Made by a program: the position numbers and the translations under genes. Below, one piece after another: positions 17,756 to 38,700 of a stretch of 64,000 bases of DNA; position 1 is the first letter of the stretch, and every line of letters begins with the position of its first letter. The DNA is from Eutreptiella sp. 'Long Island Sound 2002' (lineage: Eukaryota > Protista > Euglenida), in assembly GCA_964036045.1 (NCBI GenBank), contig OZ038378.1, positions 13,020,001 to 13,084,000 on the forward strand, read 5' to 3'. A model generated the notes under the pieces. That model did not search any database. It saw only the letters and a program-made list of their open reading frames with translations, and was not told the DNA's origin.

Positions 17756-20700
17756 GTGTGTTGAGTGTATCGCCAATTCTGAATTTTTCCGTAGCCAGTG
17801 TTGTGCAATGCGGTTTCGGTAGTTTAATTCGCCGACTACCGTTCTGCAGCGTTCACTCATCAGTGCCTAACATCCTCAGGTGTCTCCGTTGTCGAGAGCC
17901 GAGACGCCATCACCGTGACAGAACCGGGTGCCCGTGCAGGCTATAGCCGATATGCAACGGCTGAACCGGTTACACGAAGTTATGTTCGCAACGAACCAAT
18001 TATTCGATCCTATGTACGAGACGAACCTACTACTAGTGTGAGATCCTACGTGTCGGAGCCAGCCCCGGTGGTTGTGAGAGAGCCTGTGTCCCCTGTGGTG
18101 GTCCGGGAGAATTGGGCTCCTTCTTCGCCAGTCCGTGTGGTTGAACCTTTGCGGGTCGTGGAACGCGTTGTGGAGCCTATCTATTCGGAGCCTATCCGGA
18201 TTGTGGAGGACCCTGTTCGCTATGTCGACGAGCCCATCCGGGTCGTGGACCAGCCTCGCCGCATTCTGTCCGAGCAGACAGGGACTTCAAGCGACTGGGT
18301 CGTGGTGGAGAAGCCAGCCAGGTGTGCTTCACAGTAGGCATATCGGCTTGGCCGCACTGCACTGCACGAATTTACACGCATTTGTAAGAGGATAGCTTAC
18401 TCGACTTGCAGTCGCGTCCACCTGCAATGTAAGGCTTCAATCGGTTCGGTCATCCTGCGTTGGCAACACAAGTCAGAAGAAGTGAACGCCCCAACCTGTT
18501 CCTGGCGCTGCCCCGACGCTCAGTGTAACAGCGTGCAAAGTGTAGATTATGCCTCACGGAAAACGTGCAACCGCTGCCAGCAACCCCAGACTTCAATTGT
18601 GAGTAACGGGTGGGCATCGGCACAACCTCCAATGCTGTGCAGCCAACTTCGCGTTGTCTCGGCATTCGCGTTGTGCCTGACCTGGCGCAATCCGTTCACG
18701 CCCCGCTGCCAGCACGGCTGATGACGGGCCTTGGGCTCTGCTTGCAGAGACAAAGTTTGGAGTCCAAATGTCAACGGGGGGGTTAGGCATTCGCATGCTC
18801 GCGAATTGTCAGCATGACGGGTGGGAAACGGATGCGAGTTGTGTGCCATGCACCACGCGCAACTTTCTGACCCCGACGTTAGTCCAGCAGTCAAACAACG
18901 CGCGTGGACACAAGACCTCCACCGTAGTGGATTTCGTCCAAATTTGTTGCAGACAGCCACTTCTTCGCAGGGAGGAATGAGTCTAGGGGCCGCAAGGGGC
19001 CAACCAACACAAGGTTTGTGGGGGCAAGGTCTGCGATTAACCGACGGTGGCTGGGGCTGGCCACTTGCGTCACTGACGAGACTCAGCTAGCAGTTGGGCT
19101 GCCAACCGCCAGCCTGGGTGCGACGTTTTTTTTCTCTTCGTTACAAAAGCGGTAAACGTACAGAACAAGCGTCACCGTCCACAGCACAATTCAGGCTGTT
19201 AAAAATCAGGCTCGCAGCAAACGCCAAAGAGCAACAGAACCCTCCTCCTGGGAGCCGCGAAATGTAACCCCGAGCCAGCCCGGCGTGTTTGAGCAGCCGC
19301 CGATCTCCGTGGAGGCCACAGACCACTGCCACAGGCACAGTGTTGAGGAACACTGTGCTCGCTTGGCAGGGCGCGTGGTGTTGCTTGGGCACTCAGCCTA
19401 GGCTGCATTGTGAATCCATCAGCGGAAGAGCTCTTCAAGTGCTCTATGCACAGTCGCTTGGATTTGCCCTGCTGATCTTGGCTGCTTCACAGACATCCGA
19501 AACCTATCTCGTCGAATCAGGGAAGGCGTGGAATTAGAGCACATGCACCGAGCACATGCACCAGCAAAGCATTTTCTGTTTGAAGTAGATTTTTTCGCCT
19601 GTTCTGTTCTGCAGTGCAAGCGGCAGCGTGATTCGGCACAGCGTGGTGAGTTCGACTGGTGTTAAGACAGCCGACGGGCGGTACATTATTGGAGAGTCAG
19701 GGTATGCACATGTCATTGTGCAGTACAGTCTCGCCCGACGTGCAAGGTCCAAGTCCGAGATTACTTTCGACGATTGAAGAGTCGAGGAAATCTTTTCGCT
19801 GGCCCGTGCGGACTCTGGGGACCCGGCAGCGCAGCGACATTTTAAATATCTCACAGCGGCAATTTGTTAAGCCAGGATTGTCGTGTTCTGTTCTCGTGTT
19901 CTGTGGTGATATTGAAAAGAAATTCCTCCGGGTAGCCCTGACTAATTCGGGACTTGTCTTCCATTCAGCACACTAGAGTGAAGCCACTCCGGATCAGCAC
20001 AGAAATGTCAAGAAGAAAATCCACTCTTCATCCACTTGCGTCCTTGTTATCACTGGCTTGAATAATCAACGCCGAATGCATTTCGGTCCATTGCTCCTGA
20101 ACCCTTCTCAATTTTCTGTTAGTTTGGAGGCTTCTGAGAGTGGCATCATCCGCCTTCCCGACGGCAGAATCAAATACGCTGATGGAACCATCAAGGCGGG
20201 CTTCCCACAACGCACAGCGTATGTCGGTGATGTTGTTGGGTGATGTCTTTTTTACCCTACCCGTCGGTTCTTAGACCCATATGCGTCTTTCGTCGACAGC
20301 GGCCCCCGAAACAACCGCAGAGACCAACACAGACGAAACCATAGCGGAACAACACAACACAACACAAGATAACGCCAAACCCACATTCTGAGGCTCAGCT
20401 GTATGTCGTCGAACCTTTGCATGTTTGAGGTCTAAAATTCACGCTGGTGGGATTTCGTGCATTTTCGCTCAGAGGACACCTTTGTGTACACGTGCCTTTT
20501 CAGTTTGCAGGGCAGCATTGTGACTTTGGCCGACGGCACGGTGTTGCACCCTGACGGGACTATGGAGTATCCAGATGGCACCGTTCGGAAGCCAAACAAC
20601 ATGACGTACAGGTTTGTCCAGTCGCCTGCCTGGTGCAGCTGGAAATATGCATTCGGCATCCGCTGGATAGAGGCAATAATTTCGACGGCAAAGGCAACAT

Positions 20701-23700
20701 GGCGCAGGCACGAGCCACCGCTGGGGAAGTCGGGTTTTCAACTGGGGGGGGTCAATAGAGCCCCCCAAAACTGTGGGGAAGAGGGGGGGTTCGGGAAAAG
20801 GGCTCAACTGACAGGACCATTAATCAGTTATTATGACCAGCAACCGGTTATTATGAACTCTGGGGCTTTTGAGCACTGAAAATGGTCATTTTTTTCCACC
20901 AAGCACATGGCAAATGATGATTTTTCTGAACTTCCTCGACGCGCTGATTCCAAATTTCCCATTTTCATTTTGCGCCAAATTTTGGGTCAGGGTCGCCTCC
21001 GGGACCCGGGGGGCAGTCTCGGTAGGATCCTGGGGGGCCCGTCAATTGAGCCTTTTGGGGGGGGGGGGGGGCATCTGTGCGACACTTCCCACCCTGCTGC
21101 AATTTGTCCGCTGTTTGGTCAGCTCAACAACCCAAGACTTGAACCTGCGAGCCTGTCACCTGTAGGGCGATCGTCCGGTTTTGGCGTCTGTGTGCCCTGG
21201 GATTGTCTCAACGCAAAAGCGACCTTGCACCTAGAAACGTTCGTCTCCTGTGCAGTTCTGGACCTACTCCTCTTGAGAGTATCAATGCAATGAAGGAATC
21301 CAACGATTCGGCGTTGGCCAAGGTTACGGAACAGTTGGAAAATCTTCAGGTTTGTTCAGCATTTCTCGATGCCCTTCCTTTTTTTTTTCTTTCACCGCGT
21401 TTTGTCGCGGTAAAATTTGACCTCCAGTGAAGTGGGCGTTGCACTGGGTCCACCGGCACAATATAACCATATTTGAATGGTGCTGGACGAGTATTTGATG
21501 TTGAGCACCAATGCAGTGCGTAGCCTGGTTCTGTTGTTCTGTCGTCTGCTCTATTTTGCCCACTTGCGCCCACAAGGCTTCTAAGTATTGCCATTCTCAC
21601 AGCCCAATGTTGTTGCAAACGGTAGCTTTTGTTGTAGCTGAAGACCCAGGGAGGGCTCTGCCCTTGTCTAGCAAGGGCAGAGCGTGAGGTCATCATCTTG
21701 TCATTGGCAGAGCCATCGCCGTGTAGCAGTAATGATGACATGTTTTTGTATGATGACATGTCATGAGGAGGGTGATGTGTCAATGCCATGCATGCCTTTT
21801 TGACTCGACTGCACCCTGCTGTATACCCTATGGTTAGCTGCTTCCACTGGCTATTGGCTGCTGGGGGAGAGATTGTAAGGGCGAATTTCCAATAATTGTC
21901 TTGAGTACTCGGCTATGGACATTTTGAGTCAGTCCCCGCCCAAAAAAAAAATAATGAAAAAGATTGTAAGGCGAATGATGAGTTCATTGTGCTGACAACT
22001 GATGTCTCTTTATCTCCTTTTCACCCCTATCTGATGCCTGTGTTATTCATGTGTGTTGGCTGTTTCAAGATTGTGAGAGCGAATGATGAGTTCATTGTGC
22101 TGACAACTGATGTCTCTTAATCTCCTTTTCACCCCTATCTGATGCCTGTGTTATTCATGTGTGTTGGCTGTTTCAAGATTGTGAGAGCGAATGATGAATT
22201 CATTGTGCTGACAACTGATGTCTCTTAATCTCCTTTTCACCCCTATCTGATGCCTGTGTTATTCATGTGTGTTGGCTGTTTCAAGATTGTGAGAGCGAAT
22301 GATGAATTCATTGTGCTGACAACTGATGTCTCTTATCTCCTTTTCACCCCTATCTGATGCCTGTGTTATTCATGTGTGTTGGCTGTTTCAAGATTGTGAG
22401 AGCGAATGATGAGTTCATTGTGCTGACAACTGATGTCTCTTAATCTCCTTTTCACCCCTATCTGATGCCTGTGTTATTCATGTGTGTTGGCTGTTTCAAG
22501 ATTGTGAGAGCGAATGATGAATTCATTGTGCTGACAACTGATGTCTCTTATCTCCTTTTCACCCCTATCTGATGCCTGTGTTATTCATGTGTGTTGGCTG
22601 TTTCAAGATTGTGAGAGCGAATGATGAATTCATTGTGCTGACAACTGATGTCTCTTATCTCCTTTTCACCCCTATCTGATGCCTGTGTTATTCATGTGTG
22701 TTGGCTGTTTCAAGATTGTGAGAGCGAATGATGAGTTCATTGTGCTGACAACTGATGTCTCTTAATCTCCTTTTCACCCCTATCTGATGCCTGTGTTATT
22801 CATGTGTGTTGGCTGTTTCAAGATTGTGAGAGCGAATGATGAATTCATTGTGCTGACAACTGATGTCTCTTATCTCCTTTTCACCCCTATCTGATGCCTG
22901 TGTTATTCATGTGTGTTGGCTGTTTCAAGATTGTGAGAGCGAATGATGAATTCATTGTGCTGACAACTGATGTCTCTTAATCTCCTTTTCACCCCTATCT
23001 GATGCCTGTGTTATTCATGTGTGTTGGCTGTTTCAAGATTGTGAGAGCGAATGATGAATTCATTGTGCTGACAACTGATGTCTCTTAATCTCCTTTTCAC
23101 CCCTATCTGATGCCTGTGTTATTCATGTGTGTTGGCTGTTTCAAGATTGTGAGAGCGAATGATGAATTCATTGTGCTGACAACTGATGTCTCTTATCTCC
23201 TTTTCACCCCTATCTGATGCCTGTGTTATTCATGTGTGTTGGCTGTTTCAAGATTGTGAGAGCGAATGATGAATTCATTGTGCTGACAACTGATGTCTCT
23301 TAATCTCCTTTTCACCCCTATCTGATGCCTGTGTTATTCATGTGTGTTGGCTGTTTCAAGATTGTGAGAGCGAATGATGAATTCATTGTGCTGACAACTG
23401 ATGTCTCTTATCTCCTTTTCACCCCTATCTGATGCCTGTGTTATTCATGTGTGTTGGCTGTTTCAAGATTGTGAGAGCGAATGATGAATTCATTGTGCTG
23501 ACAACTGATGTCTCTTAATCTCCTTTTCACCCCTATCTGATGCCCGTGTTATTCATGTGTGTTGGCTGTTTCAAGATTGTGAGAGCGAATGATGAATTCA
23601 TTGTGCTGACAACTGATGTCTCTTATCTCCTTTTCACCCCTATCTGATGCCTGTGTTATTCATGTGTGTTGGCTGTTTCAAGATTGTGAGAGCGAATGAT

Positions 23701-26700
23701 GAATTCATTGTGCTGACAACTGATGTCTCTTAATCTCCTTTTCACCCCTATCTGATGCCCGTGTTATTCATGTGTGTTGGCTGTTTCAAGATTGTGAGAG
23801 CCAATGATGAATTCATTGTGCTGACAACTGATGTCTCTTATCTCCTTTTCACCCCTATCTGATGCATCTGCTGATCCCTATCTGATGCATTTTGTTACCC
23901 AAGCCTGAGTCTCCTGGCCTTTGTTGCTAATTGTGCCCATGAACTTTTAATATTTTATCAGAAAATCCATGACTGCACTCGAACCAGCACTGGCAAGAAG
24001 GCAATCCTGTAAACTATCATTTGACAGAGTGGTGCATTTGCATTTTGAAGTCTACTTGAATAAGCTGGTGCATTTGAAAGCAAGGGTGATCTCAGAGGAC
24101 CTTTTGAAGTCACAATGTTGTGCTGACACGTATTTTGTGTGTCTGTATGTGTGACCGCGCGCATGCGCACCTGTATATGTTTCCATCGTTTTTGACCGCT
24201 TTGCATGTGTGCTGTAGCAGCCAGCTTTCTCCATAGCGCTGGACATTTGGGGGGGGGGGGCAGACTGGACATGCGTCTTTGACACATACCCCTACCCCAC
24301 ATTATTGCTTTTTGTCATTGTGTCAATCTTGTGCCCATGTCTTGTCATATGTTCCCCCCACAGAACATTTTTTATGTGCTGTAGGTAATGGGCAGTCCCC
24401 CTTCAATAATTCGTTGATTGCTTTAAGCTGGATTTGCGTTGGATGCGAAAACTCTATTGCCTTCCGCAAGTCCACCTCACAGAGAATCTACCCCAAGCAA
24501 CACACACCGAAAATAGGGTAAAAACTACATAAATACGGGCCAAAACATGTTTTACATATCTTGGATGGTCATTTTAGGTGATCACAATATCCAAAAAAAT
24601 AAGTTTCGGAAACTTCGATTTTTGAGCTGTATAGGGTGAAAAACTCCACAAGCAGGTTGTGTACCAATCCCATTTGACCCCCCCCCCCCCCCCACCTTTC
24701 GAAGGTACCCCTCGGAAGGGGAGTGGGCCCGAGTGCGACCGGGCGTGGGGTCCCCGGGCAGCGGAGTATGGATGGTGCAAACAGAGCAAGGCAGACCGCA
24801 CTCGCCACAAATGGCGCAGAGCGCAGCAGGGAATCGCTTACCACAGGCGTAGCTTCCAGGTAGGCCTTGGTGAAGGAAGGCCTGTGAGGACCACAGGCGT
24901 AGCTCCCAGGTAGGCCTCGGCGAAGGAAGGCGTAGTAGAGTGTGAGGGCCAGCCACAGCTCCGTCGCACTGTATTGCCAGGGTGGTGGCTTGCAGTGGAC
25001 AGTTGAGCTTGGGCCGGTAGTGTGCGGGATGGTCCCTAAGGATGGACCAGGCACTGCCGTGCACTCTTGTGGGGCATGTTGGTGGGCGTGGCTACTCACT
25101 ACCGCCAGCAAGGAAGATACTCCGCCATGGACAGAGTGCGAATACTCTGAAGCAAGATATTTCTGCAGCGCGCTCGCCATGAATGGCGCAAAGCACAGAA
25201 GATATTACAGCAACGCACTACCAACAAGTCACATATTGGTGAGCTAGCACCCATGGCCTTGTGTGACATTTGCCGTTGCTGGTTGTGGTGAGCACCTCCT
25301 AGGTCTTTGTGATGACCACATACCGGGCACTGATCAGGCCATCGGGGGAGGATGCCATGGGCAGAAGTTGCAGTCTAGATTCCCACCCACGAAGGTGGAT
25401 GCCCGTAGTAGTACGGATGCCTGCTTCAACCACCAAGGCCTTGTGCCAACCCCCCGCTCCCAATACCCAAATAGGGTGAAAAACACATAAATACGGCCTA
25501 AAACATGCTTTACATACCTCGGATGTTCATTTTAGGTGATCATAAAATCGAAAAAATAAGTTTTGGAAACTTCGATTTTTGAGCTGTATAGGGTGAAAAA
25601 CTGCATCAGCAGGTTGTGTACCATTCCCTTGGGAGACCCCCCCCCCCTGCGCCCTACAGAGGGAAAGGCCAAGGGAAGGGAAAGGGGAGGGGAGAGGGAA
25701 GGTTAGGGCAAGGAGGAAGAGGAAGGTCAAAGGGTGGTGAGAAGCTGATGGGCACCACCGCCTATGGAGGGAAAGGGTCCAAGGGAAGGGCAGCGAATGG
25801 CGATCGGCCACTAGGCGCCGCCAGCTGCAGACGAGATCATCACACCATGGCGTCATGCCAAAACCCCCCCTGCGCCCAATACCCAAATAAGGTGAAAAAC
25901 ACGTGAATACGGCCTAAAACATGCTTTACATACCTTGGATGGTCATTTTAGGTGATCATAATATCAAAAAAATAAGTTTCGGAAACTTCAATTTTTGAGC
26001 TACATAGGGTGAAAAACTGCATAAGCCCAATACCCAAATAAGGTGAAAAACACGTGAATACGGCCTAAAACATGCTTTACATACCTTGGATGGTCATTTT
26101 AGGTGATCATAATATCAAAAAAATAAGTTTCGGAAACTTCAATTTTTGAGCTACATAGGGTGAAAAACTGCATAAGCAGGTTGTGCACCAATCCCTTGGG
26201 AGACCCCCCCCCCCTGCGCCCAATACCCAAATAAGGTGAAAAACACGTGAATACAACCTAAAACATGCTTTACATACCTTGGATGGTCATTTTAGGTGAT
26301 CACAATATAAAAAAATAAGGTTGGGAAACTTCGATTTTTGAGCCGTATAGGGTGAAAAACTCCACAAGCAGGTTGTGCACCGGCCCATTCACTCATCCAA
26401 GCCATTCTTGGAAACAGTCATGTCGCGTCTTTGGCACGGGTTTTGCCCGGCCCTCGGCAAGGGTACAGAGTGCAAAAAAAATGGCCTTTTGTATCCTTGT
26501 AGGCATATACTGTCACAAAGTCCCCATTCACACCCCTCAGAGTGGGTAGAACGGGGTCACGCAGGTCGCCAAAACCGCCCATATGGCAAAAATGGCTGAA
26601 AAGTGCATAAACTGCATGAGCGCTCGTCCCAATCTGCCCCATACAAACCCCATGGATTCAAGACGTGAAAACACTTTTTCGGCTCAAAATCGAAAAAAAC

Positions 26701-29700
26701 CAGTTGTCTGTCATTTCCGGAGTTGAAAGCTCTCCACAGGTTTTTAAACACAAAGCGCGGTTCTTACCCATAGCCCCCCCCCCCTTTTGCCCATTCCCGG
26801 ATTGCTCCTACCCCTTCTTTGTTGAAATCTTGGCCCTGGTGTACTAGCTCACATACCAAATTTAGGAGTTCCAGAATCTCAGGGGCTATGTTTTGACCTC
26901 GTTCAAACGACATACATGTACGTATCTCCCCAGGGGGGGCATGGATACCATCAATTTGAGGTGTCCAATTTTGATTGCAAAGGTGGATATTGAGGTTCTC
27001 CTTGGTGTCTACTGGTCGGACAAGGTAATATTATTGGTGCACTATTGTGCAATTGGAAATTTTTTGCATGCAAGGCAGTATGCTGTACCGGTGTCATGCA
27101 GAACACTTCATTTTTCACGGTTGGGCACAAGAGGGCACGTGGAGTATTGGGGTTGGCAAATGGTTTTGCCAGCGAGAAGTTGTATTTCATGCGCAAAATT
27201 CTTGAGCCAGATTGCTTGCCACAGGCCCTGCTAAACCTGCTGCCAAGGTGGCTGCCAAGCTTGCAGATAAGTCTGCGGCTGGCAGGGTAGTCTTTAAGGA
27301 ACCAGTTTTTTTTTTGTTAAGGACCGCCCCAAGGGACCACCAACCGCCAACTCCCGCCAACCGCCAACCACCAACCACGACCAACCGCCACCAACCGCCA
27401 GTTGCCAACTGCCAACCACCAATCGCTGCCAACCGCCAACCGCCACCAACCATGGTTGAACACATGGAGTGTCCGCGGGCTTTTTTGGGAAAACTGTGTT
27501 ACGGAACTTTTTTTTTTCCGCCGTTAAGGACCGCCCTGGCGGCTGGAGAGCCAATTCCAGTGGCCCCTCTTGAGCATGTGCAGTTCTCCAAAGTGAGGTA
27601 TTTGGGCCCAAAAAAGTTGCACACAGTGCATTCTCTCAGTAGAACTGAATTAAACCCAACAAACAATTTCCGGGTCATTTGTGGATTATACGCCGGTGTT
27701 TGCATGGCTTGCTTCATGTCACATGTCCTTTGCCCCCCCCCCCCCCTGGGTGGGGGGGATACACCATCACTTTGGTGGGGGGGATACACCATCACTTTGG
27801 TATATGTTCCCCTGGGGTGTGGGGATACTGTTGCGTGCAGCCAGGTATTTCTCAAGGGGCATGGGGAGGGAGGGGTGCATTCCAGGCAGAATCAGTTCAT
27901 GACGCTGATCTGCCTACTGCAGGTTGAAATGCACAAGGAGAAGGAAATTTCAGCCTCAATGGTGCAGCAGATGAAGGCTGAGAAGTCCTCAGAGGAAACC
28001 AAGCTGAAGCAGCAATTGAATGAGTTGTTGGCAGAGAAGAAAATCCATGAAAAGGAGCTGACAATCCTGAAGGAGGGTGGCCCTGGTGGTGCTGGTGGTG
28101 GTCCATGGGCACTTGTGGAGCGGCTGCAGCAGGAAATTGATCAGTTGCGAGAATCGGTCTGCTTTCTGTCTCGTTACAAGTTGTCCTGTTTTGGTGGTGT
28201 CAAGTGGCAAGAAAGCCCCTTTGCTTTCATATTGTTGACATTAGGTGGAATGGATCAACCCAGACCTGAAAAAATGACCCCACCCCCTGGTTTTTGACCT
28301 GGAAAATATGAGTGTTTCGGAATTTTTCGAACTACAGTTCTCAACAGTTTCTGCACCGTTTCACAGAGTCAGTGGCACATTCACGCTTTCAGTGCGATAA
28401 CCCTTTTCCACCAACAGCGGTCGGTTGAGGACTACGTCTTTATCCGTCGTGGTCTACTGGAAAAGGGCAAAAATAACTGGATGGAAGGTTATTTGTACAT
28501 GGATCAAGTTTAAACAAAAGACCCCGACTCACCACATTTTTGCAATATCCCCTTCAACAGTGCTATCTCGGGGGGGGGGGGGCGAACGCGTCAACCATTG
28601 GACCCCTTCCTATTACCTAGGAATTACCTAGATCTCCAGAACATGTCTGAATACCGCTTGACGTCCGCATATTGGGAGGGTGACTGCCGCCTCCGATATC
28701 TCCTGTGTTCATCCATCACGGATACGCCTCAGCAAGGGAGCTTCAACGACATTGTGCAGCACCTGCACAGCACCACGGGGTTTTAGATCACGTACGCATC
28801 CTTTGTGGATGACAAGTGCCCCCCCCACCCCCCTTTGTAATAGCTACGCCCTTGTCCAAGCTAGCAGGCGTAGGGACCGTATTAATTTGGTACCTAATTT
28901 GATTTGGTACAAATGTAGTGCAGCCACATAAGACACTGGCTTGGTGACAAATTTGCCAGTTACATAGGGTCATGGACACATTTGTTGTGAGTGTTTGCCC
29001 ACTTGAACCCACATAGCTCTGATTTTGGGGATATTTGTGCATTATATGCCCTTTTCTTGCACCGGCTCACCATGTATGTGGTACGCGCAAGGTACGGCCT
29101 TGTCCAAGCACCAGAAGGCACAGGGACCGTATTAATTTGGGAATTTACTTTAGCTATTACAAGCGGTATGGGGGGGGGGGGGTTGTGAGGTGGCCGTCAA
29201 CCGTGGTTTGTCTGCATGTGAGGGTGAGACTTCCTTCGCCACACGGGTTGTGGAAAATCAGGGGACATTGGTGATTCACCCGGACACAATGGTGGTGGGA
29301 AACCGGTTGCCGACGCCACCGTTCGACATGTAACATGCTGTCCTCCATGCTGCCGCTGGATATGTGTTGACTTTTTGTTGAGTGTCAGCACACACAGATG
29401 GGATGTCCGCCTATTTATGCATTGAAGATGCTCAGAATGAAACAGGGAATCCAAAATGCCCCAAAATAAAAAAAAAGACCCCCCCTCCTCCCCAGACCCT
29501 TTTGCTGAGCCCGCGGGTGTTGGGCCCCGCAAGTGATCTGAAACGTACCCGGTGCAATGTCTTTTGCAAGGGAATTGCATGGTTGTTGGTTTTCTGTTCC
29601 CAGTTGCCTCCAATTCTGTGTTATTTTTGCACATGCTTCCTTGCATGCCTACTTTGTTTTCTGTATGTGCTCAGCCAGGATGCATGGCTGGAAGTGCTAT

Positions 29701-32700
29701 CAATTTGTTGTGGAGGCAGTGGTGAATTTGTGAGTTGTGTAGCAGGCAGTCATGGATTATCATTTCACTGCAAGGCAATCTGCATCAAAAGGTGATGGTT
29801 CCAAGATGTGTCTGTGAGCTCCTGTTGACCGTGTCTTCTGCTTCAGGCAGCGCAACACCCAGCCCAGATGCGTGAAATGCTGATGGCTAAGGAGGAGGAG
29901 TTGCGTATCTTGCATGAGCAATACATTGCTGAGGCCAAAGCTGGTGCTGAGGCCAAGGGCTTGTTGACAGCTGTCTCGGAAGACAAGGTTCGCGAGGTGG
30001 AAACCCGTGAGATGATGATCAACGAGGCGGTGTTGAGGAAAGAACAGGTGCACTGCAGTGGTCGTCTGGTTCATGATTAACGAGTGCACCCATTGTCGGT
30101 GTTTGCTGTGTGTGCTTTCAGATAAGATTGTCGTGCTGGGAATGCAGGGGGTGCACATTGGCAGTTTCGAAATATGTTGCTCGGTGCCATCTTCTGTTTC
30201 TTTCACCAGCTCATGGCCCAACAAAAGGAGCAAGAAATTGCGAATCTTCTCGCAAGGGAGACTGCGGAGAAGGAGCAAATCAGAGTAGAGGCTTCCCGCC
30301 AACTTGAGGCTGAAGTTGCAGGTGTGCTTTCTGCACATTGCCACAAATGGTGCACTGTTGATATTATCCCCCCCCCCCCCATAATGGGGGTGTAGTGCGC
30401 GCCGTGCACGCGCTGTGCACAAAGTTTGTACAGGATCATACCAAAGCTGCATAGGAGTGCCTAGTACCAGTAACAATTAGCCTTGTTATGCATCTATGTG
30501 AGTTGCTTGCATGCTTTGCCCTCATTTCTGGTGTATTGGTGTGTTGTTTTGCATCCTTTTTGATAGGTTTGTGGTATCTATCAAGAATTTGGGGTTGGAT
30601 TGGCCCCTTTCCGGTTGAGGAGATGGACTGGCCCCTTTGGCATCCACTGTGATTTCAGCAACTTGTTTTGAAATGAGCCTGCGGGTTTTCCACTCTCCGA
30701 AATCCAAGGATGAAAAGAATCCAGATTGCGTTCTGAGGCTGTCCAACATTGTGGGGTGTAGTATGGTCTGTATAAGCAAGAATATTGCCAATTGTAGCTA
30801 AAACCCCGAATTTCTCGCTGTCATGTGCACGCTGTGCCGACGCGCCCCCAATGCAATCGGGGAACAAGTCAAACAAAAACAAACCCAGCAAGTACGCATT
30901 TCAATTCTTTTGGGGTCAGCAAGCAAAAGATGTCCGTCAAATCACTGGTGGTTGACATGTTGCAAAATCTTCGCAAAATAATTTAACAGTGAGGACATTT
31001 AAACCCGTGTCCGTGTGTTTAGCGCTGGAAAATCACGGTTGGACGGAATGAACCGGCGGTACCCTCGGCGGCGGTTCGGCTCGGCCGGTTAGGTTCCGGC
31101 GGTTCGGCTCGGCGGCGGTGTCGGCCGGCGATTCGGCCGGCCGGACCGCCGGCCGGCCGAGTCGGCCGGCCGGACCGCCGGAACCTACCCGGCCGGCCGG
31201 CCGGCCGGCCGAACCACCGCCCGGCGGTCCGGCCGGCCGACTCGGCCGGCCGGACCGCCGGGCCGTTCCGACGCACCCCCCACCACCCCCAAGGATCCCG
31301 GGTTAGGCACCCTTTTTGTTCACCCACCTACACCCATTGGGGACCGCGAATGCAACGGTCCTAGGAGCATCATGGTGTCCTGTTCAATGTTCATGTTCAA
31401 TGCAATCGTCAGCCCGCGGACAAGGGGCCCCTGGCGCGGGATGCTGCCACCCACATCGGCAAGGTGGTACACACAAAACGCGGTGCCTACACAAGGCGGT
31501 GCACACAAAAGGCGGTCTGTGGCCACCGCAGGAGTCATGTTATTTAAGGGGCCACAGGCAAGGGCGGCACACACAAAAGCGGTGCCTACACACGGCGGTG
31601 CACACAAAAAGGCGGTCTGTGGCCACCGCAGGAGTCATGTTGTTTAAGGGGCCACAGGCAAGGCGGTACACACAAAACGCGGTGCCTACACAAGGCGGTG
31701 CACACAAAAGGCGGTCTGTGGCCACCGCAGGAGTCATGTTATTTAAGGGGCCACAGGCAAGGCGGTACACACAGAACGCGGTGCCTACACAAGGCGGTGC
31801 ACACAAAAAGGCGGTGCCTACACAAGGCGGTGCACAAAACGCGGCGGCCTGTGGCCACCGCAGGAGTCATGTTATTTAAGGGGCCACAGGCAAGGCGGCA
31901 CACACAAAACGCGGTGCCTACACAAGGCGGTGCACACAAAAAGGCGGTCTGTGGCCACCGCAGGAGTCATGTTGTTTAAGGGGCCACAGGCAAGGCGGTA
32001 CACACAGAACGCGGTGCCTACACAAGGCGGTGCACACAAAAAGGCGGTGCCTACACAAGGCGGTGCACAAAACAAGGCGGCCTGTGGCCACCGCAGGAGT
32101 CATGTTATTTAAGGGGCCACAGGCAAGGCGGTACACACAAAACGCGGTGCCTACACAAGGCGGTGCACACAAAAGGCGGTCTGTGGCCACCGCAGGAGTC
32201 ATGTTATTTAGGGGCCACAGGCAAGGCGGTACACACAGAACGCGGTGCCTACACAAGGCGGTGCACACAAAAAGGCGGTGCCTACACAAGGCGGTGCACA
32301 AAACAAGGCGGCCTGTGGCCACCGCAGGAGTCATGTTATTTAAGGGGCCACAGGCAAGGCGGCACACACAAAACGCGGTGCCTACACAAGGCGGTGCACA
32401 CAAAAAGGCGGTCTGTGGCCACCGCAGGAGTCATGTTATTTAAGGGGCCACAGGCAAGGCGGTACACACAAAACGCGGTGCCTACACAAGGCGGTGCACA
32501 CAAAAGGCGGTCTGTGGCCACCGCAGGAGTCATGTTATTTAAGGGGCCACAGGCAAGGCGGTACACACAGAACGCGGTGCCTACACAAGGCGGTGCACAC
32601 AAAAAGGCGGTGCCTACACAAGGCGTTGCACAAAAAAAGGCGGTCTGTGGCCACCGCAGGAGTCATGTTATTTAAGGGGCCACAGGCCAGGCGGTACACA

Positions 32701-35700
32701 CAGAACGCGGTGCCTACACAAGGCGGTGCACACAAAAGGCGGTCTATAGCCACCGCAGGAGTCATGTTATTTAAGGGGCCACAGGCAAGGCGGTACACAC
32801 AGAACGCGAACGCGGTGCCTACACAAGGCGGTGCACACAAAACGCGGTGCCTACACAAGGCGGTGCACAAACAAGGCGGCCTGTGGCCACCGCAGGAGTC
32901 ATGTTATTAAGGGGCCACAGGCAAGGCGGTACACACAGAACGCGGTGCCTACACAAGGCGGTGCACACAAAAAGGCGGCCTGTGGCCACCGCAGGAGTCA
33001 TGTCATTTAAAGGGCCTAAGAGGGGGCTTTTGGTTTTTCAAGGGGCACATGGGGTGGGGGGGGTATCGGAATGAGCCGGCAGTTCGGCCGGCCGATTCGG
33101 CCGGCCGGACCTCCGCCCGGCGGTTCGGCCGGCCGATTTCGGCCGGCCGGCCGCCGAACGCCCGGTACTTACCAGGCCGGCGGTCCGCCCGGCCGGCCGG
33201 CCGGCCGAACCGCCGCCCGGCGGTGTCGGCCAAATTTTCGGCCAAAATCCTCCGCGGCGGTCTCGGCCGGCCGAGTCGGCCGGCCGAACCGCCGCCGAGT
33301 TTTTCGGCCGAGGACCGCCGCCGAGCCCCACCGCCGTTTCATTCCGATGAGCTGAAAATCACCTCGAAGAGGGTTGTTAGATCAAGCGCAGGTGCGTACG
33401 CCATATACCCCCCTTTTTTGGGGTCATTCGCGTACTATACCCCAAGGTATGGTACCGGATGTCCAACCCCTTGTAAAATCATCATTTTAGGAGAGAAAAT
33501 GATCCCCCAATGAATTTTTCGTTTTTGACCCCTTTACCCCCCCCGTACCCGGGTACCCCTTTTTGGGGGGGTGGGGGGTGTCGGGGGGGGGGGGGGGTCA
33601 AAACTTCTTTGCGTATTCTGGGTGCTGTGTGTGGATTTGGACCCAGGTCCCGGGCAACTTTTTTCTTGTACATGGACCCCCTAACCCATGGCGGGGGTCC
33701 CGGGTCCGAATTCCAGGTACCCCCGGTCGCCCCCCCCTATGGGCCCTTGCTAGTGAGGACTTAGCCGTTTTCACGCTGGATAAGGCTGTTTAGTGACACC
33801 TGCAAGATTTCCAAAAATTCGACTTTTCCGAAACCCTTCTGTTGCCCCTAGGATGGGTTTGGGGTGATGATTTAGTGACAATACGGGTACTTGAGCACCC
33901 AGAGGGACCCACGTTGTGGCCGCTGGGCCTATGTAGCCCGTGCCACGGGCCCCCCAAAAGCTTCAAAATCACCTCGCAGAGGTTGTTAGATCAAAGCCAG
34001 GCAGGCGTATATATGGGGAAAACGCCACATACCCCCCCATTTTGGCCTTTTTGGGCCTATTCGCGTACCCTACCCCAAGGGGTTGAATTGTTAGTTTAAC
34101 CCCTTGTAAAATCATTATTTTGCCCAATAAACGCATCCCCAATGAGTTTTTGGTCCGGACCCCCCCAGACCCCCCCACTTGAAACCCACTTTTTTGAGGT
34201 TTTGAGGGAGGGGGGAGGTGGGGTGGGGGATGGTCAAAAAATGACCCCCCTTTTTTTTGGGTCGAAAATCATGAATCTTTTGGTTTTTTCGATTTTGAGC
34301 CGAAAAAGTGTTTCCGGGTCCCGACTCCATAGGGTTTGTATGGGGCGGAGTGGGACGAGCGCTGATGCAGTTTATGCACTTTTCAGCCATTTATGCTATG
34401 TTGGCGGTTTTGGCAACCTCGGTGAACCCGTGGTACCCACCCTGAGGGGTGCGAGTGGGGATGTTGTGACAGTATATGCCTACTAGGATACGAAAGGACG
34501 TTTTTTGCAGTGTCTAGCCTTGCTTATGGCCGTTCACAACCCGTGCAAAGACGCGAAATGACTGTTTCCACCAATAATGGCCTAGTGAATGGGGAGGTAC
34601 ACAACCTGCTTATGCAGCTTTTCACCCCAGGCAGCTCAAAAATCGAAGTTTTCGAAACTTGTTTTTTGATATTGTGACCACCCAAAATGACATTTCAAAC
34701 TATGCAAAGCATGTTTTAGGCCGTATTTACGTGTTTTTCACCCTATTTGGGTGTTAAGTCCGGGGGGGGGGGGTCTCCCAAGGGACGGGTGCACAACCTG
34801 CTTATGCAATTTTTCAACCCGGACAGGTCAAAAATCGAAGTTTTCGAAACTTGTTTTTTTGATATTGTGACCACGCCAAAATGACATTTCAAGCTATGCA
34901 AAGCATGTTTTAGGCCGTAGTTTACGGTGTTGTTTCCACCCTCCCCTATTTGGGGTATCAGGTGGGGGGGGGGGGACGGGTGCACAACCTGCTTATGCAG
35001 TTTTTCACCCCTGGGCAGCTCAAAAATGGAAGTTTTTGAAACTTGTTTTTGTGATATTGTGATCACTAAAATGACCATCCAAGGTATGTAAAGCATGTTT
35101 TAGGCCGTATTTACGTGTTTTTCACCTTATTTGGGTATTAGGTCGGGGGGGGGGGGGGGGGCTCCCAAGGGACGGGTGCACAACCTGCTTATGCAGTTTT
35201 TCACCCTGGGCAGCTCAAAAATGGAAGTTTTTGAAACTTGTTTTTGTGATATTGTGATCACCTAAAATGACCATCCAAGGTATGTAAAGCATGTTTTAGG
35301 CCGTATTTACGTGTTTTCACCCGATATGGGTATTAGGTCGGGGGGGGGGGGGGGGGGGGGCTCCCAAGGGACGGGTGCACAACCTGCTTATGCAGCTTTT
35401 CACCCGGACAGCTCAAAAATGGAAGTTTTTGAAACTTGTTTTTGTGATATTGTGATCACCTAAAATGACCATCCAAGGTATGTAAAGCATGTTTTAGGCC
35501 GTATTTACGTGTTTTTCACCCGATATGGGTATTAGGTCGGGGGGGGGGGGGGGGGGGGGGGGGGGCTCCCAAGGGACGGGTGCACAACCTGCTTATGCAG
35601 CTTTCACCCCGGACAGCTCAAAAATGGAAGTTTTTGAAACTTGTTTTTGTGATATTGTGATCACCTAAAATGACCATCCAAGGTATGTAAAGCATGTTTT

Positions 35701-38700
35701 AGGCCGTATTTACGTGTTTTTCACCCGATATGGGTATTAGGTCGGGGGGGGGGGGGGGGGGGGGGGCTCCCAAGGGACGGGTGCACAACCTGCTTATGCA
35801 GTTTTCACCCCAGGACAGCTCAAAAATCGAAGTTTTCGAAACTTGTTTTTTGATATTGTGACCACCCAAAATGACATTTCAAACTATGCAAAGCATGTTT
35901 TAGGCCGTATTTACGTGTTTTTCACCCTATTTGGGTGTTAAGTCCGGGGGGGGGCTCCCAAGGGACGGGTGCACAACCTGCTTATGCAGTTTTTCACCCC
36001 GGACAGGTCAAAAATCGAAGTTTTCGAAACTTGTTTTTTTTGATATTGTGACCACCCAAAATGACATTTCAAGCTATGCAAAGCATGTTTTAGGCCGTAT
36101 TTACGTGTTTTTCACCCCTATTTGGGTGTTAGGTCGGGGGGGGGGGGTCTCCCAAGGGACGGGTGCACAACCTGCTTATGCAGTTTTCACCCCGGACAGC
36201 TCAAAAATGGAATTTTTTGAAACTTGTTTTTGTGATATTGTGATCACCTAAAATGACCATCCAAGGTATGCAAAGCTGTTTTAGGCCGTATTTACGTGTT
36301 TTTCACCCGATTTGGGTATTAGGTCCAAGGGGGGGGGTCTCCCAAGGGGATTGGTACACAACCTGCTTATGCAGTTTTTCACCACGCTCGCGGTAGATTC
36401 TCTGCGAGGTGGACTTGCCGAAGGCAATAGAATTGCTGTTTGTAGGTGGTTCAATGGCATTTGGTGTGAGCACAAACCGCCTAAGCAGTTTTCAACCCTT
36501 TACAAGTCAAAAATGGAAAATTTTGCAAAACATTTTTTTGATATTGTGACCCTTTACAATGATGAAATATGCTATGTAAAGCATGTTTTAGCCCCCTTTT
36601 ATGTGTTTTTCACCCTATTTGGGGGGGGGGGGGGGGGGCTCCCAAGGGGTCTAGGGCGCAACCTGCTGATGCAGTTTTCCCGCCCCAACAGCTCAAAATG
36701 GAAATCACCTCGAAGAGAGGTTGTTAGATCAAGCGCAGGCGCGGGCGTCATATACCCCCCTTTTTTGGGGGTCATTCGCGTAGCATACCCCAAGGCATGA
36801 TATTGGATGTCCAACCCCTTGTAAAATCATTATTTTGCNNNNNNNNNNNNNNNNNNNNNNNNNNNNNNNNNNNNNNNNNNNNNNNNNNNNNNNNNNNNNN
36901 NNNNNNNNNNNNNNNNNNNNNNNNNNNNNNNNNNNNNNNNNNNNNNNNNNNNNNNNNNNNNNNNNNNNNNNNNNNNNNNNNNNNNNNNNNNNNNNNNNNN
37001 NNNNNNNNNNNNNNNNNNNNNNNNNNNNNNNNNNNNNNTTTTCACCCTATTTGGGTGTCAGGTCGGGGGGGGGGGGGGTCTCCCAAGGGACGGGTGCACA
37101 ACCTGCTTATGCAGTTTTTCACCCCGGACAGCTCAAAAATCGAAGTTTTCGAAACTTGTTTTTTTGATATTGTGACCACCCGAAATGACCATCCAAGCTA
37201 TGGAAAGCATGTTTTAGGCCGTATTTACGTGTTTTTCACCCTATTTGGGTATCAGGTCGAGGGGGGGGGGGTCTCCCAAGGGACGGGTGCACAACCTGCT
37301 TATGCAGTTTTTCACCCCGGACAGCTCAAAAATGGAAGTTTTTGAAACTTGTTTTTGTGATATTGTGATCACCTAAAATGATCATCCAAGGTATGTAAAG
37401 CATGTTTTAGGCCGTATTTACGTGTTTTTCACCCGATTTGGGTATTAGGTCCAAGGGGGGGGGGGGGGTCTCCCAAGGGATTGGTACACAACCTGCTGAT
37501 GCAGTTTGTCACCCTGGGCAGCTCAAAAATCGAAGTTTTCGAAACTTGTTTTTTGATACCGTGATCACCTAAAATGATCATCCAAGGTATGTAAAGCATG
37601 TTTTAGCCGGTATTTATGTAGTTTCCACCCTATTTTGGGTGTGTGTTGCTCGCGGTAGATTCTCTGCGAGGTGGACTTGCCGAAGGCAATAGAATTTCTG
37701 AAACTGATTTTTTTGATACTTTGACCATCCAAAATGATCAAATATCCCATGTGAAGCATGTTTTAGCCCCCTTTTATGTGTTTTTCACACTATTTGGGTG
37801 TTGGGGGTGGGGTGGCTCCCAAGGGGTCTAGGGCGCAACCTGCTTATGCAGTTTTCCCGCCTCAGCAACTCAAAAATGGAAATTTCTGAAACTGATTTTT
37901 TTGATACTTTGACCATCCAAAATGATCAAATATCCCATGTGAAGCATGTTTTAGCCCCTTTTTATGTGTTTTTCACCCTATTTGGGTGTGGGGGGGGGGG
38001 GCTCCCAAGGGGTCTAGGGCGCCACCTGCTTATGCAGTTTTCCCGCCTCAGCAGCTCAAAAATGGAAATTTCTGAAACTGATTTTTTTGATACTTTGACC
38101 ATCCAAAATGATCAAATATCCCATGTGAAGCATGTTTTAGCCCCCTTTTATGTGTTTTTCACACTATTTGGGTGTTGGGGGTGGGGTGGCTCCCAAGGGG
38201 TCTAGGGCGCAACCTGCTTATGCAGTTTTCCCGCCTCAACAGCTCAAAAATGGAAATTTCTGAAACTGATTTTTTTGATACTTTGACCATCCAAAATGAT
38301 CAAATATCCCATGTGAAGCATGTTTTAGCCCCCTTTTATGCGTTTTTCACACTATTTGGGTGTTGGGGGTGGGGTGGCTCCCAAGGGGTCTAGGGCACAA
38401 CTTGCTTATGCAGTTTTCCCGCCTCAGCAGCTCAAGAATGGTTGTCCCTCTCCCCTCATCGAGGTGCCCTGCCGAAGGCAATAGAATTTTTCTGTCAATT
38501 CCAGGAGGCTCTAAGGCAATGTGCCTGTCGTGAAGGGAATGCGAACGAAAACCTCTTTTGGGATTTTGCAAGAATCAATAGTTTTCGATGATCACAGTTT
38601 CCTAGGTACAATATGTTTTTCGCCCTCGAAGTGTGGGCAAAAAACGCAATGGTAACCATGGAACATCATCAATTGACACTGTTCAAATGTTTCTGGTCCT

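Follow-up and report, generated by a model that had tools for sequence, protein, structure and literature searches.

An 18-copy tandem array of box C/D snoRNA-like units in a spliced intron of Eutreptiella, a probable source of guides for a conserved LSU rRNA methylation

Introduction

Is a long and nearly homogeneous tandem repeat inside an intron of a protein-coding gene ordinary satellite DNA, or does it consist of RNA genes? This question is raised by a stretch of 64,000 nucleotides (nt) from the euglenid Eutreptiella sp. 'Long Island Sound 2002' (assembly GCA_964036045.1; contig OZ038378.1, positions 13,020,001 to 13,084,000 of the forward strand), hereafter called the window, in which 18 copies of a 107/108-bp unit follow one another within an intron. 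A preliminary description of the window had interpreted these units as copies of a small nucleolar RNA (snoRNA) that belongs to the box C/D class and resembles U80/snR60. Having followed up this proposal computationally, we consider it likely that the array represents functional box C/D snoRNA genes, whose products would be freed from the intron of the host gene or from a precursor that traverses it, and would guide a conserved 2'-O-methylation of a guanosine (Gm) in the large-subunit (LSU) rRNA. If true, the array provides, for a marine euglenid that has received little study, a concrete guide that can be tested and whose target is an LSU methylation of universal conservation (equivalent to Gm908 of yeast), and real RNA genes of this genome would be hidden by repeat masking.

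Anatomy and copy number of the array

The array occupies the following position:

21960..23865, plus strand: a 107/108-bp unit in 18 tandem copies, each comprising one box C/D snoRNA-like gene (~70 nt) and a U/G-rich spacer of 38-41 nt

Tandem Repeats Finder reported a period of 108 bp, 17.7 copies and 98% matches across 21960-23865, together with a 215-bp higher-order period that stems from the alternation of 108- and 107-bp units. Cutting at the unit start yields 18 units of 107 or 108 bp, the last of which (unit 18) stops directly after its D box and has no spacer. Each unit reads, in order, 16 nt, ATGATGA, 10 nt, CTGA, CAAC, TGATGT, 24-25 nt, CTGA and the U/G-rich spacer; the distance between boxes C (ATGATGA) and D (CTGA) is about 50 nt in each of the 18 copies, and in all copies the D' box (CTGA) is followed after 4 nt by the C' box (TGATGT). 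The unit has the anatomy of a box C/D snoRNA, with boxes C and D, a terminal stem and internal D' and C' boxes. The preliminary description had claimed 18 near-identical units whose boxes are correctly arranged as C, D', C' and D, and this is what we find: all four boxes are present in every copy. Unit 2 may serve as an example:

22078..22147, plus strand: predicted snoRNA of unit 2, with the short terminal stem GAGCG/UGCCU around the C and D boxes; the alignment with Rfam family RF00309 pairs its ends
22083..22089, plus strand: box C, ATGATGA
22090..22103, plus strand: D' guide (10 nt, first base A/G polymorphic) and D' box, CTGA
22108..22113, plus strand: box C', TGATGT
22125..22138, plus strand: D guide, invariant in 18 of 18 copies and complementary to LSU AUAGGGGUGAAAGG over 14 bp, one G-U pair included
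22139..22142, plus strand: box D, CTGA

In copy 1 (21966-22042) the terminal stem comprises 5 bp (AGGCG/UGCCU); it is short, yet inside the usual range of box C/D RNAs. Minimum free energy folding gave no significant structure, as expected for RNAs of this type, and no open reading frame of 50 or more amino acids crosses the array on either strand. The copies differ from each other at the base 3' of box C (A or G), by a one-base insertion or deletion between C' and the D guide, by a T/C exchange in the spacer of two units, and, where copies 1 and 18 are concerned, in the 5' stem, while the boxes and the D guide are untouched by these differences in all 18 copies. Guide and D box together make up a 19-mer that the window contains 18 times, exclusively in the array, at a chance expectation of 0.02.

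The copy number, whose confirmation from reads the preliminary description had called for, is no assembly artefact. In sequencing run X1, possibly the sample behind the assembly, the k-mer depths of five sub-variant segments, expressed relative to the unique depth of 31.2, amount to 6.8, 11.5, 4.5, 6.1 and 5.6, and fit the 7, 12, 6, 8 and 7 assembled copies of the same segments. The array is flanked on both sides by short related sequences:

21866..21887, plus strand: partial older copy of the 5' end of the unit (AGATTGTAAGGGCGAAT), recognized by alignment, 75 nt upstream of the array

On the other side, a second CCCTATCTGATGCAT follows the last unit at 23866-23895 (plus strand) as a partial older copy. 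Both flanking partial copies have the appearance of remnants of the duplications from which the array started.

Position of the array in a spliced host intron

The array was claimed to lie on the sense strand of an intron between exons that end at 21349 and begin at 27923. Both exon ends proved to be exact, the intron is of the GT..AG type, and RNA contigs span the junction:

21253..21349, plus strand: host exon upstream of the intron, covered by two RNA contigs (2022 and 2558 nt; depth 95-174)
21350..27922, plus strand: host intron, 6573 nt, GT..AG, with its spliced form in metatranscriptome contigs
27923..27960, plus strand: start of the downstream host exon, whose first 30 nt form the loose end of the RNA contigs; coiled-coil coding continues beyond

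In two estuary metatranscriptomes, contigs of 2022 and 2558 nt (depth 95 and 174, respectively) cover 21253-21352; at one end they run on into the exon that starts at 27923, of which they include the first 30 nt, and at the other end into the preceding exon. Since these contigs join the 21349 exon to the 27923 exon, the intron, which contains the array in sense orientation, is spliced in nature. The host gene is well expressed in both estuary data sets, as judged from the depth of its exon. It extends from 17915 to 30080 (plus strand) and codes for PDGT-type repeats with a weak Tcp10_C-like match (E value 0.17), for long coiled coils, and for repeats rich in proline and valine; when its exons were scanned with Pfam, no family was significant. 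Contigs of 137-138 nt that span the repeat were present in both RNA libraries.

The D guide and the snR60/U80 family

At gathering thresholds, Rfam gave no match in the entire window. In a permissive scan of 21600-22300 with 4227 families, the top match was RF00309, which unites yeast snR60 with plant Z15, Z230, Z193 and J17. The alignment covers the full model, including the terminal stem, box C, box D', and the D guide with box D (..UUUC.C.CCUAUCUGA aligned); it scores 26.5 bits (E value 0.05) for copy 1, whereas copies 2 and 3, the sole other copies in the scanned stretch, reach 22.2-22.3 bits. The family proposed in the preliminary description (SNORD80/snR60) is hence the best one found, at a score below the cut-off of 41.

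Both the members of RF00309 and human U80/SNORD80 share with the unit the box C/D architecture, the D-guide end ..CCUAU-CUGA, and the register, which places the second G of AUAGGGG (yeast Gm908, human Gm1625) at the methylated position. The consensus of the family ends in ..UCUUUCGCUCCUAU-CUGA and the unit in ..CCUUUUCACCCCUAU-CUGA, so that the register is identical, and the fifth position of the D guide pairs with the second G of AUAGGGG (+5 rule). In Euglena gracilis, this very G has been mapped as methylated: LSU Gm1208 corresponds to yeast Gm908, to kinetoplastid Gm959 (alpha) and to human Gm1625, according to the supplement of a ribosome structure (PMC7672448). The D-guide register and target that had been claimed for the unit are thus those of snR60 and U80. 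We infer that the predicted snoRNA would be the euglenid counterpart of yeast snR60 and human U80/SNORD80 with respect to the function of the D guide.

The likeness does not extend to the D' half. Yeast snR60 guides both Am817 and Gm908 in 25S rRNA (PMC5699541), and the D' guide of snR60/U80 hits the A817/A1521 site, whereas the D' guide of the unit has no match there: it is not complementary to UGAACUAUAC/UGAACUAUGC of the A817 site, and its best sites elsewhere comprise 9-10 nt with G-U pairs. No Euglena modification is listed at the A817 equivalent (supplement of PMC7672448), and the mismatch of the D' guide fits this absence of a methylated adenosine (Am) in E. gracilis. With Gm1208 mapped and the A817 equivalent unmodified in Euglena, a euglenid guide is expected for this G and not for A817. 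The 10 nt between box C and box D' would pair with CACAAUGAA(U/C). When compared with 120 LSU contigs described below, the D' guide gave only scattered, non-homologous matches of 9-11 nt, which we rejected as targets, including the best one in a euglenid-like contig (CACGAUGAA in L037), which would lie at position 1132, where E. gracilis has no known 2'-O-methylated nucleotide (Nm). We regard the D' guide as orphan or unconstrained.

In two further respects the unit departs from RF00309: it is shorter (~70 nt as compared with ~98), and an A in its guide replaces a G of the family, with a corresponding change from C to U in the target. Given this A, a U is predicted after the G-run of the organism's LSU rRNA. 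Such a U is plausible; it is present in at least 120 LSU contigs of eukaryotes, those that best fit the E. gracilis modification map among them (see below). The canonical AUAGGGGCGAAAGAC would leave the D guide only seven contiguous pairs; a target of the form AUAGGGGUGAAAGG or AUAGGGGUGAAAAGG would agree with a working guide, while AUAGGGGCGAAAGAC would argue against it. Euglena carries its rDNA on an extrachromosomal circle, and the present organism probably does so too. Whether E. gracilis has U or C at position 1211 could not be read from the mass-spectrometry fragment table of PMC7672448, which deals with base methylations only.

LSU rRNAs with U after the G-run

A U after the G-run is present in at least 120 LSU contigs of eukaryotes, which came from a scan of metagenomes for GGGGTGAAA and, 10-24 nt further on, CTAGTAGCTGGTT. 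All three contigs tested belong to LSU_rRNA_eukarya (417-631 bits), and the number of contigs implies that U is common at this position in some eukaryotic lineages. These U-type LSU rRNAs (L001-L120) stem from freshwater, peat and estuary metagenomes and metatranscriptomes and fall into several distinct sequence groups, the textbook base being C. In lineages with such rRNAs, guides of the snR60/U80 type should have the matching A. The contigs listed have GAAAGGC or GAAAGAC, giving 14 or 13 contiguous pairs with the guide, one G-U pair included.

Among the contigs listed, 24 fit the modification map of E. gracilis best. At the modified positions between 1165 and 1270, 11 of the 24 have 16 of 16 base identities and the rest 14-15. 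The 104-nt spacing between G1104 and G1208, in combination with A1121 and U1126, is present in 17 of the 24 best-fit contigs versus 3 of the 96 others listed; the best-fit contigs have A at 1121, where most eukaryotes have G. We take these 24 contigs as euglenid-like on the grounds of these sequence features; the dynamic-programming fit of the E. gracilis map is too permissive to prove their taxonomy. They read GGCAUAGGGGUGAAAGGC, with 14 contiguous guide pairs (one G-U), and in its wider context GGCAUAGGGGUGAAAGGCCAAUCG, the exceptions being L042 (C for U in AUA) and L115 (GAAAGUC). The sequence GGCAUAGGGGUGAAAGGCCAAUCG also agrees with Gm1201, Am1204, Gm1217, Cm1218 and Um1222 of E. gracilis. 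One contig, L037, was considered as the organism's own LSU rRNA and rejected; it is absent from the organism's runs and comes from a freshwater organism.

For comparison, the 370 other CTGA sites of the window were matched in the same manner against 52 kb of LSU sequence with at most one G-U pair allowed. None of them has 13 or more contiguous pairs upstream, and seven reach 12, whereas all 18 D guides reach 14. This control replaced an earlier one with unlimited G-U pairs, which was uninformative.

How the array may be expressed and what speaks against its function

If the array functions as we propose, the host pre-mRNA would be transcribed through the intron; the core proteins Snu13, Nop56, Nop58 and fibrillarin would bind each unit at the C/D kink-turn; and nucleases would free the units from the spliced or unspliced intron, with degradation of the U/G-rich spacers. 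The 13-14 nt upstream of box D would then pair with LSU AUAGGGGUGAAAGG, and fibrillarin would 2'-O-methylate the second G opposite the fifth guide position. Unequal crossing-over of a 215-bp dimer may have generated the copies in recent times and would thereby have raised the gene dosage, and an increase of dosage in tandem fits the euglenozoan habit of coding snoRNAs in tandem repeats.

Several observations weigh against this interpretation. The RNA depth of the array per copy is about 2-2.8, as compared with 2-2.4 for unique intron sequence, and hence shows no excess in these data, which are contigs of standard RNA-seq libraries from whose capture a 70-nt RNA would escape; with equal depths, the array RNA is possibly just pre-mRNA or carried-over DNA. 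The terminal stem pairs at four of five positions in copies 2-17, with an internal A-C mismatch, and has one pair fewer in copy 18. The RF00309 score of copy 1 falls short of the gathering score. As the copies are near-identical, their mutual conservation is uninformative on selection, and the probability that six variable sites would spare the boxes and the guide by chance is about 0.1, which is not significant. On the side of the target, the perfect partner of the guide, GAAAAGG, occurs in none of the at least 120 LSU contigs listed, and the 14-bp duplex with its one G-U pair was computed on E. gracilis-like contigs and not on the organism's own LSU rRNA. Furthermore, the contigs had been selected by 9 nt of the target, which leaves, as independent evidence, the five pairs outside these 9 nt and the site's identity.

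A separate question concerns the mode of expression and not the function: the units may be working snoRNA genes transcribed from promoters of their own, or as an independent polycistronic unit, with the intronic position being incidental. Intronic placement alone is no proof of host-driven expression, and the snoRNA clusters of Euglena are reportedly thought to be polycistronic, a view ascribed to Moore and Russell in 2012. The array lies, though, on the sense strand in an intron of a gene whose exon depth reaches 95-174, and a scan for promoters and terminators found no such signal, with the limit that a scan of the bacterial type is uninformative for this organism. We therefore give this alternative some weight, yet consider it rather unlikely.

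The main rival to a functional array, though less probable still in our estimation, is the possibility that the units are snoRNA-derived pseudogenes, in which a real gene was amplified as a satellite whose copies are left unprocessed, while the working gene is located elsewhere or only a few copies function. RNA from the array that does not rise above the intron background would be in keeping with this possibility, as would the weaker terminal stem of 17 of the 18 copies relative to copy 1, and a recent, homogenized amplification that carries no signal of selection. Pseudogenes do not readily account for boxes and an entire D guide that are intact in all 18 copies; moreover, the RNA libraries in use would miss a 70-nt RNA anyway, and in Euglena functional snoRNA genes are normally arranged in tandem. 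Finally, an ordinary satellite with coincidental box-like motifs and rRNA complementarity, for which one might invoke the commonness of short CTGA and TGATGA motifs and the sub-threshold Rfam match, is so improbable that a chance origin can be excluded for practical purposes, given the four ordered boxes, the terminal stem, the placement of a 13-14 nt guide such that its fifth position falls on a universally conserved Gm, the control in which none of 370 CTGA sites reached 13 nt, and the fact that the top family out of 4227 guides this very site.

Comparison with other clustered snoRNA genes

Functional assignment apart, the array is a further example of the known euglenozoan trait of tandem snoRNA genes, and it leaves the current picture of snoRNA biology unchanged. 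Compact box C/D snoRNAs in tandemly repeated gene clusters are said to have been described for E. gracilis by Russell, Schnare and Gray in 2006 and by Moore and Russell in 2012. Like the units of the array, the snoRNAs of E. gracilis are compact (~60-70 nt), have a short D'-C' linker and exist in many near-identical tandem copies; the LSU rRNA of this organism is heavily methylated, and Gm1208, the predicted target site of the array, is among its modifications. The clusters of E. gracilis are mixed, whereas here a single snoRNA species is repeated alone, and, in distinction to those clusters, the array resides in a spliceosomal intron of a protein-coding gene on the sense strand.

Clustered genes for modification-guide snoRNAs in Euglena and trypanosomatids are documented in PMC2784804. 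The clusters of trypanosomatids likewise contain tandemly reiterated box C/D genes, are polycistronically expressed, and the same site is methylated in these organisms (Gm959, LSU-alpha); in contrast to the array, they are intergenic, mix C/D with H/ACA-like genes, and belong to genomes from which introns are almost absent. The snR60/U80 family itself is represented by a single gene, as opposed to the 18 tandem copies in one intron found here. Intronic clusters of plants and the mammalian SNORD115/SNORD116 loci resemble the array in that many box C/D copies depend on a host transcript. The plant clusters contain a few different snoRNAs in place of 18 identical ones, and SNORD115/116 lack an rRNA target, with a single copy in each intron of a host that is non-coding.

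In yeast and vertebrates, an intron contains one snoRNA, which is released by an exonucleolytic route. Hesitantly, since we see more reason for doubt than for confidence here, we put forward the idea that long spliceosomal introns of protein-coding genes may serve euglenids as production sites for many identical snoRNAs. On this reading, one spliced intron would yield up to 18 guide RNAs, endonucleolytic cuts between the units would be required, and the capacity for rRNA methylation would be tied to the expression of non-ribosomal host genes. The free D' halves would then represent raw material for new methylation sites and could help to explain the record Nm count of euglenid rRNA. What the locus adds is a clean example of a spliced intron that holds an array of one snoRNA species only, with RNA evidence for the splicing of the host intron and a putative functional assignment to a pan-eukaryotic Gm site. 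The array may be useful for studying how multiple snoRNAs are processed from one intron in euglenids, and how these organisms came to have the highest known density of rRNA methylation.

Other elements in the window

The host intron contains a second, putative C/D-like element upstream of the array:

21730..21805, plus strand: putative C/D-like element with two ATGATGA motifs, TGATGT, and UUGA in the place of box D

It has a sub-threshold Rfam match to snR75 (21.2 bits, E value 0.045). At its 3' guide (GCAUGCCUUU) there are 10-11 nt of complementarity with AAAGGCAUGC, which is located about 185 nt downstream of the G-run, at a site where E. gracilis has no known Nm. Among the LSU contigs listed, exact AAAGGCAUGC was found only in the E. 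gracilis-like ones; one contig outside this set has a G-U variant of AAAGGCAUGC at the same offset.

Repeats of other types are also present in the window. A 151-bp repeat pair (25874-26177) lies inside the host intron and seems to be related, on the opposite strand, to a family with units of 190-205 bp. Downstream of the host gene, tandem arrays extend over 31458-32848 (units of ~99-133/331 bp) and 34596-38441 (units of 188-205 bp), and at 43005-43040 a short telomere-like CCCTAA/CCCTAG stretch adjoins C-rich low-complexity repeats.

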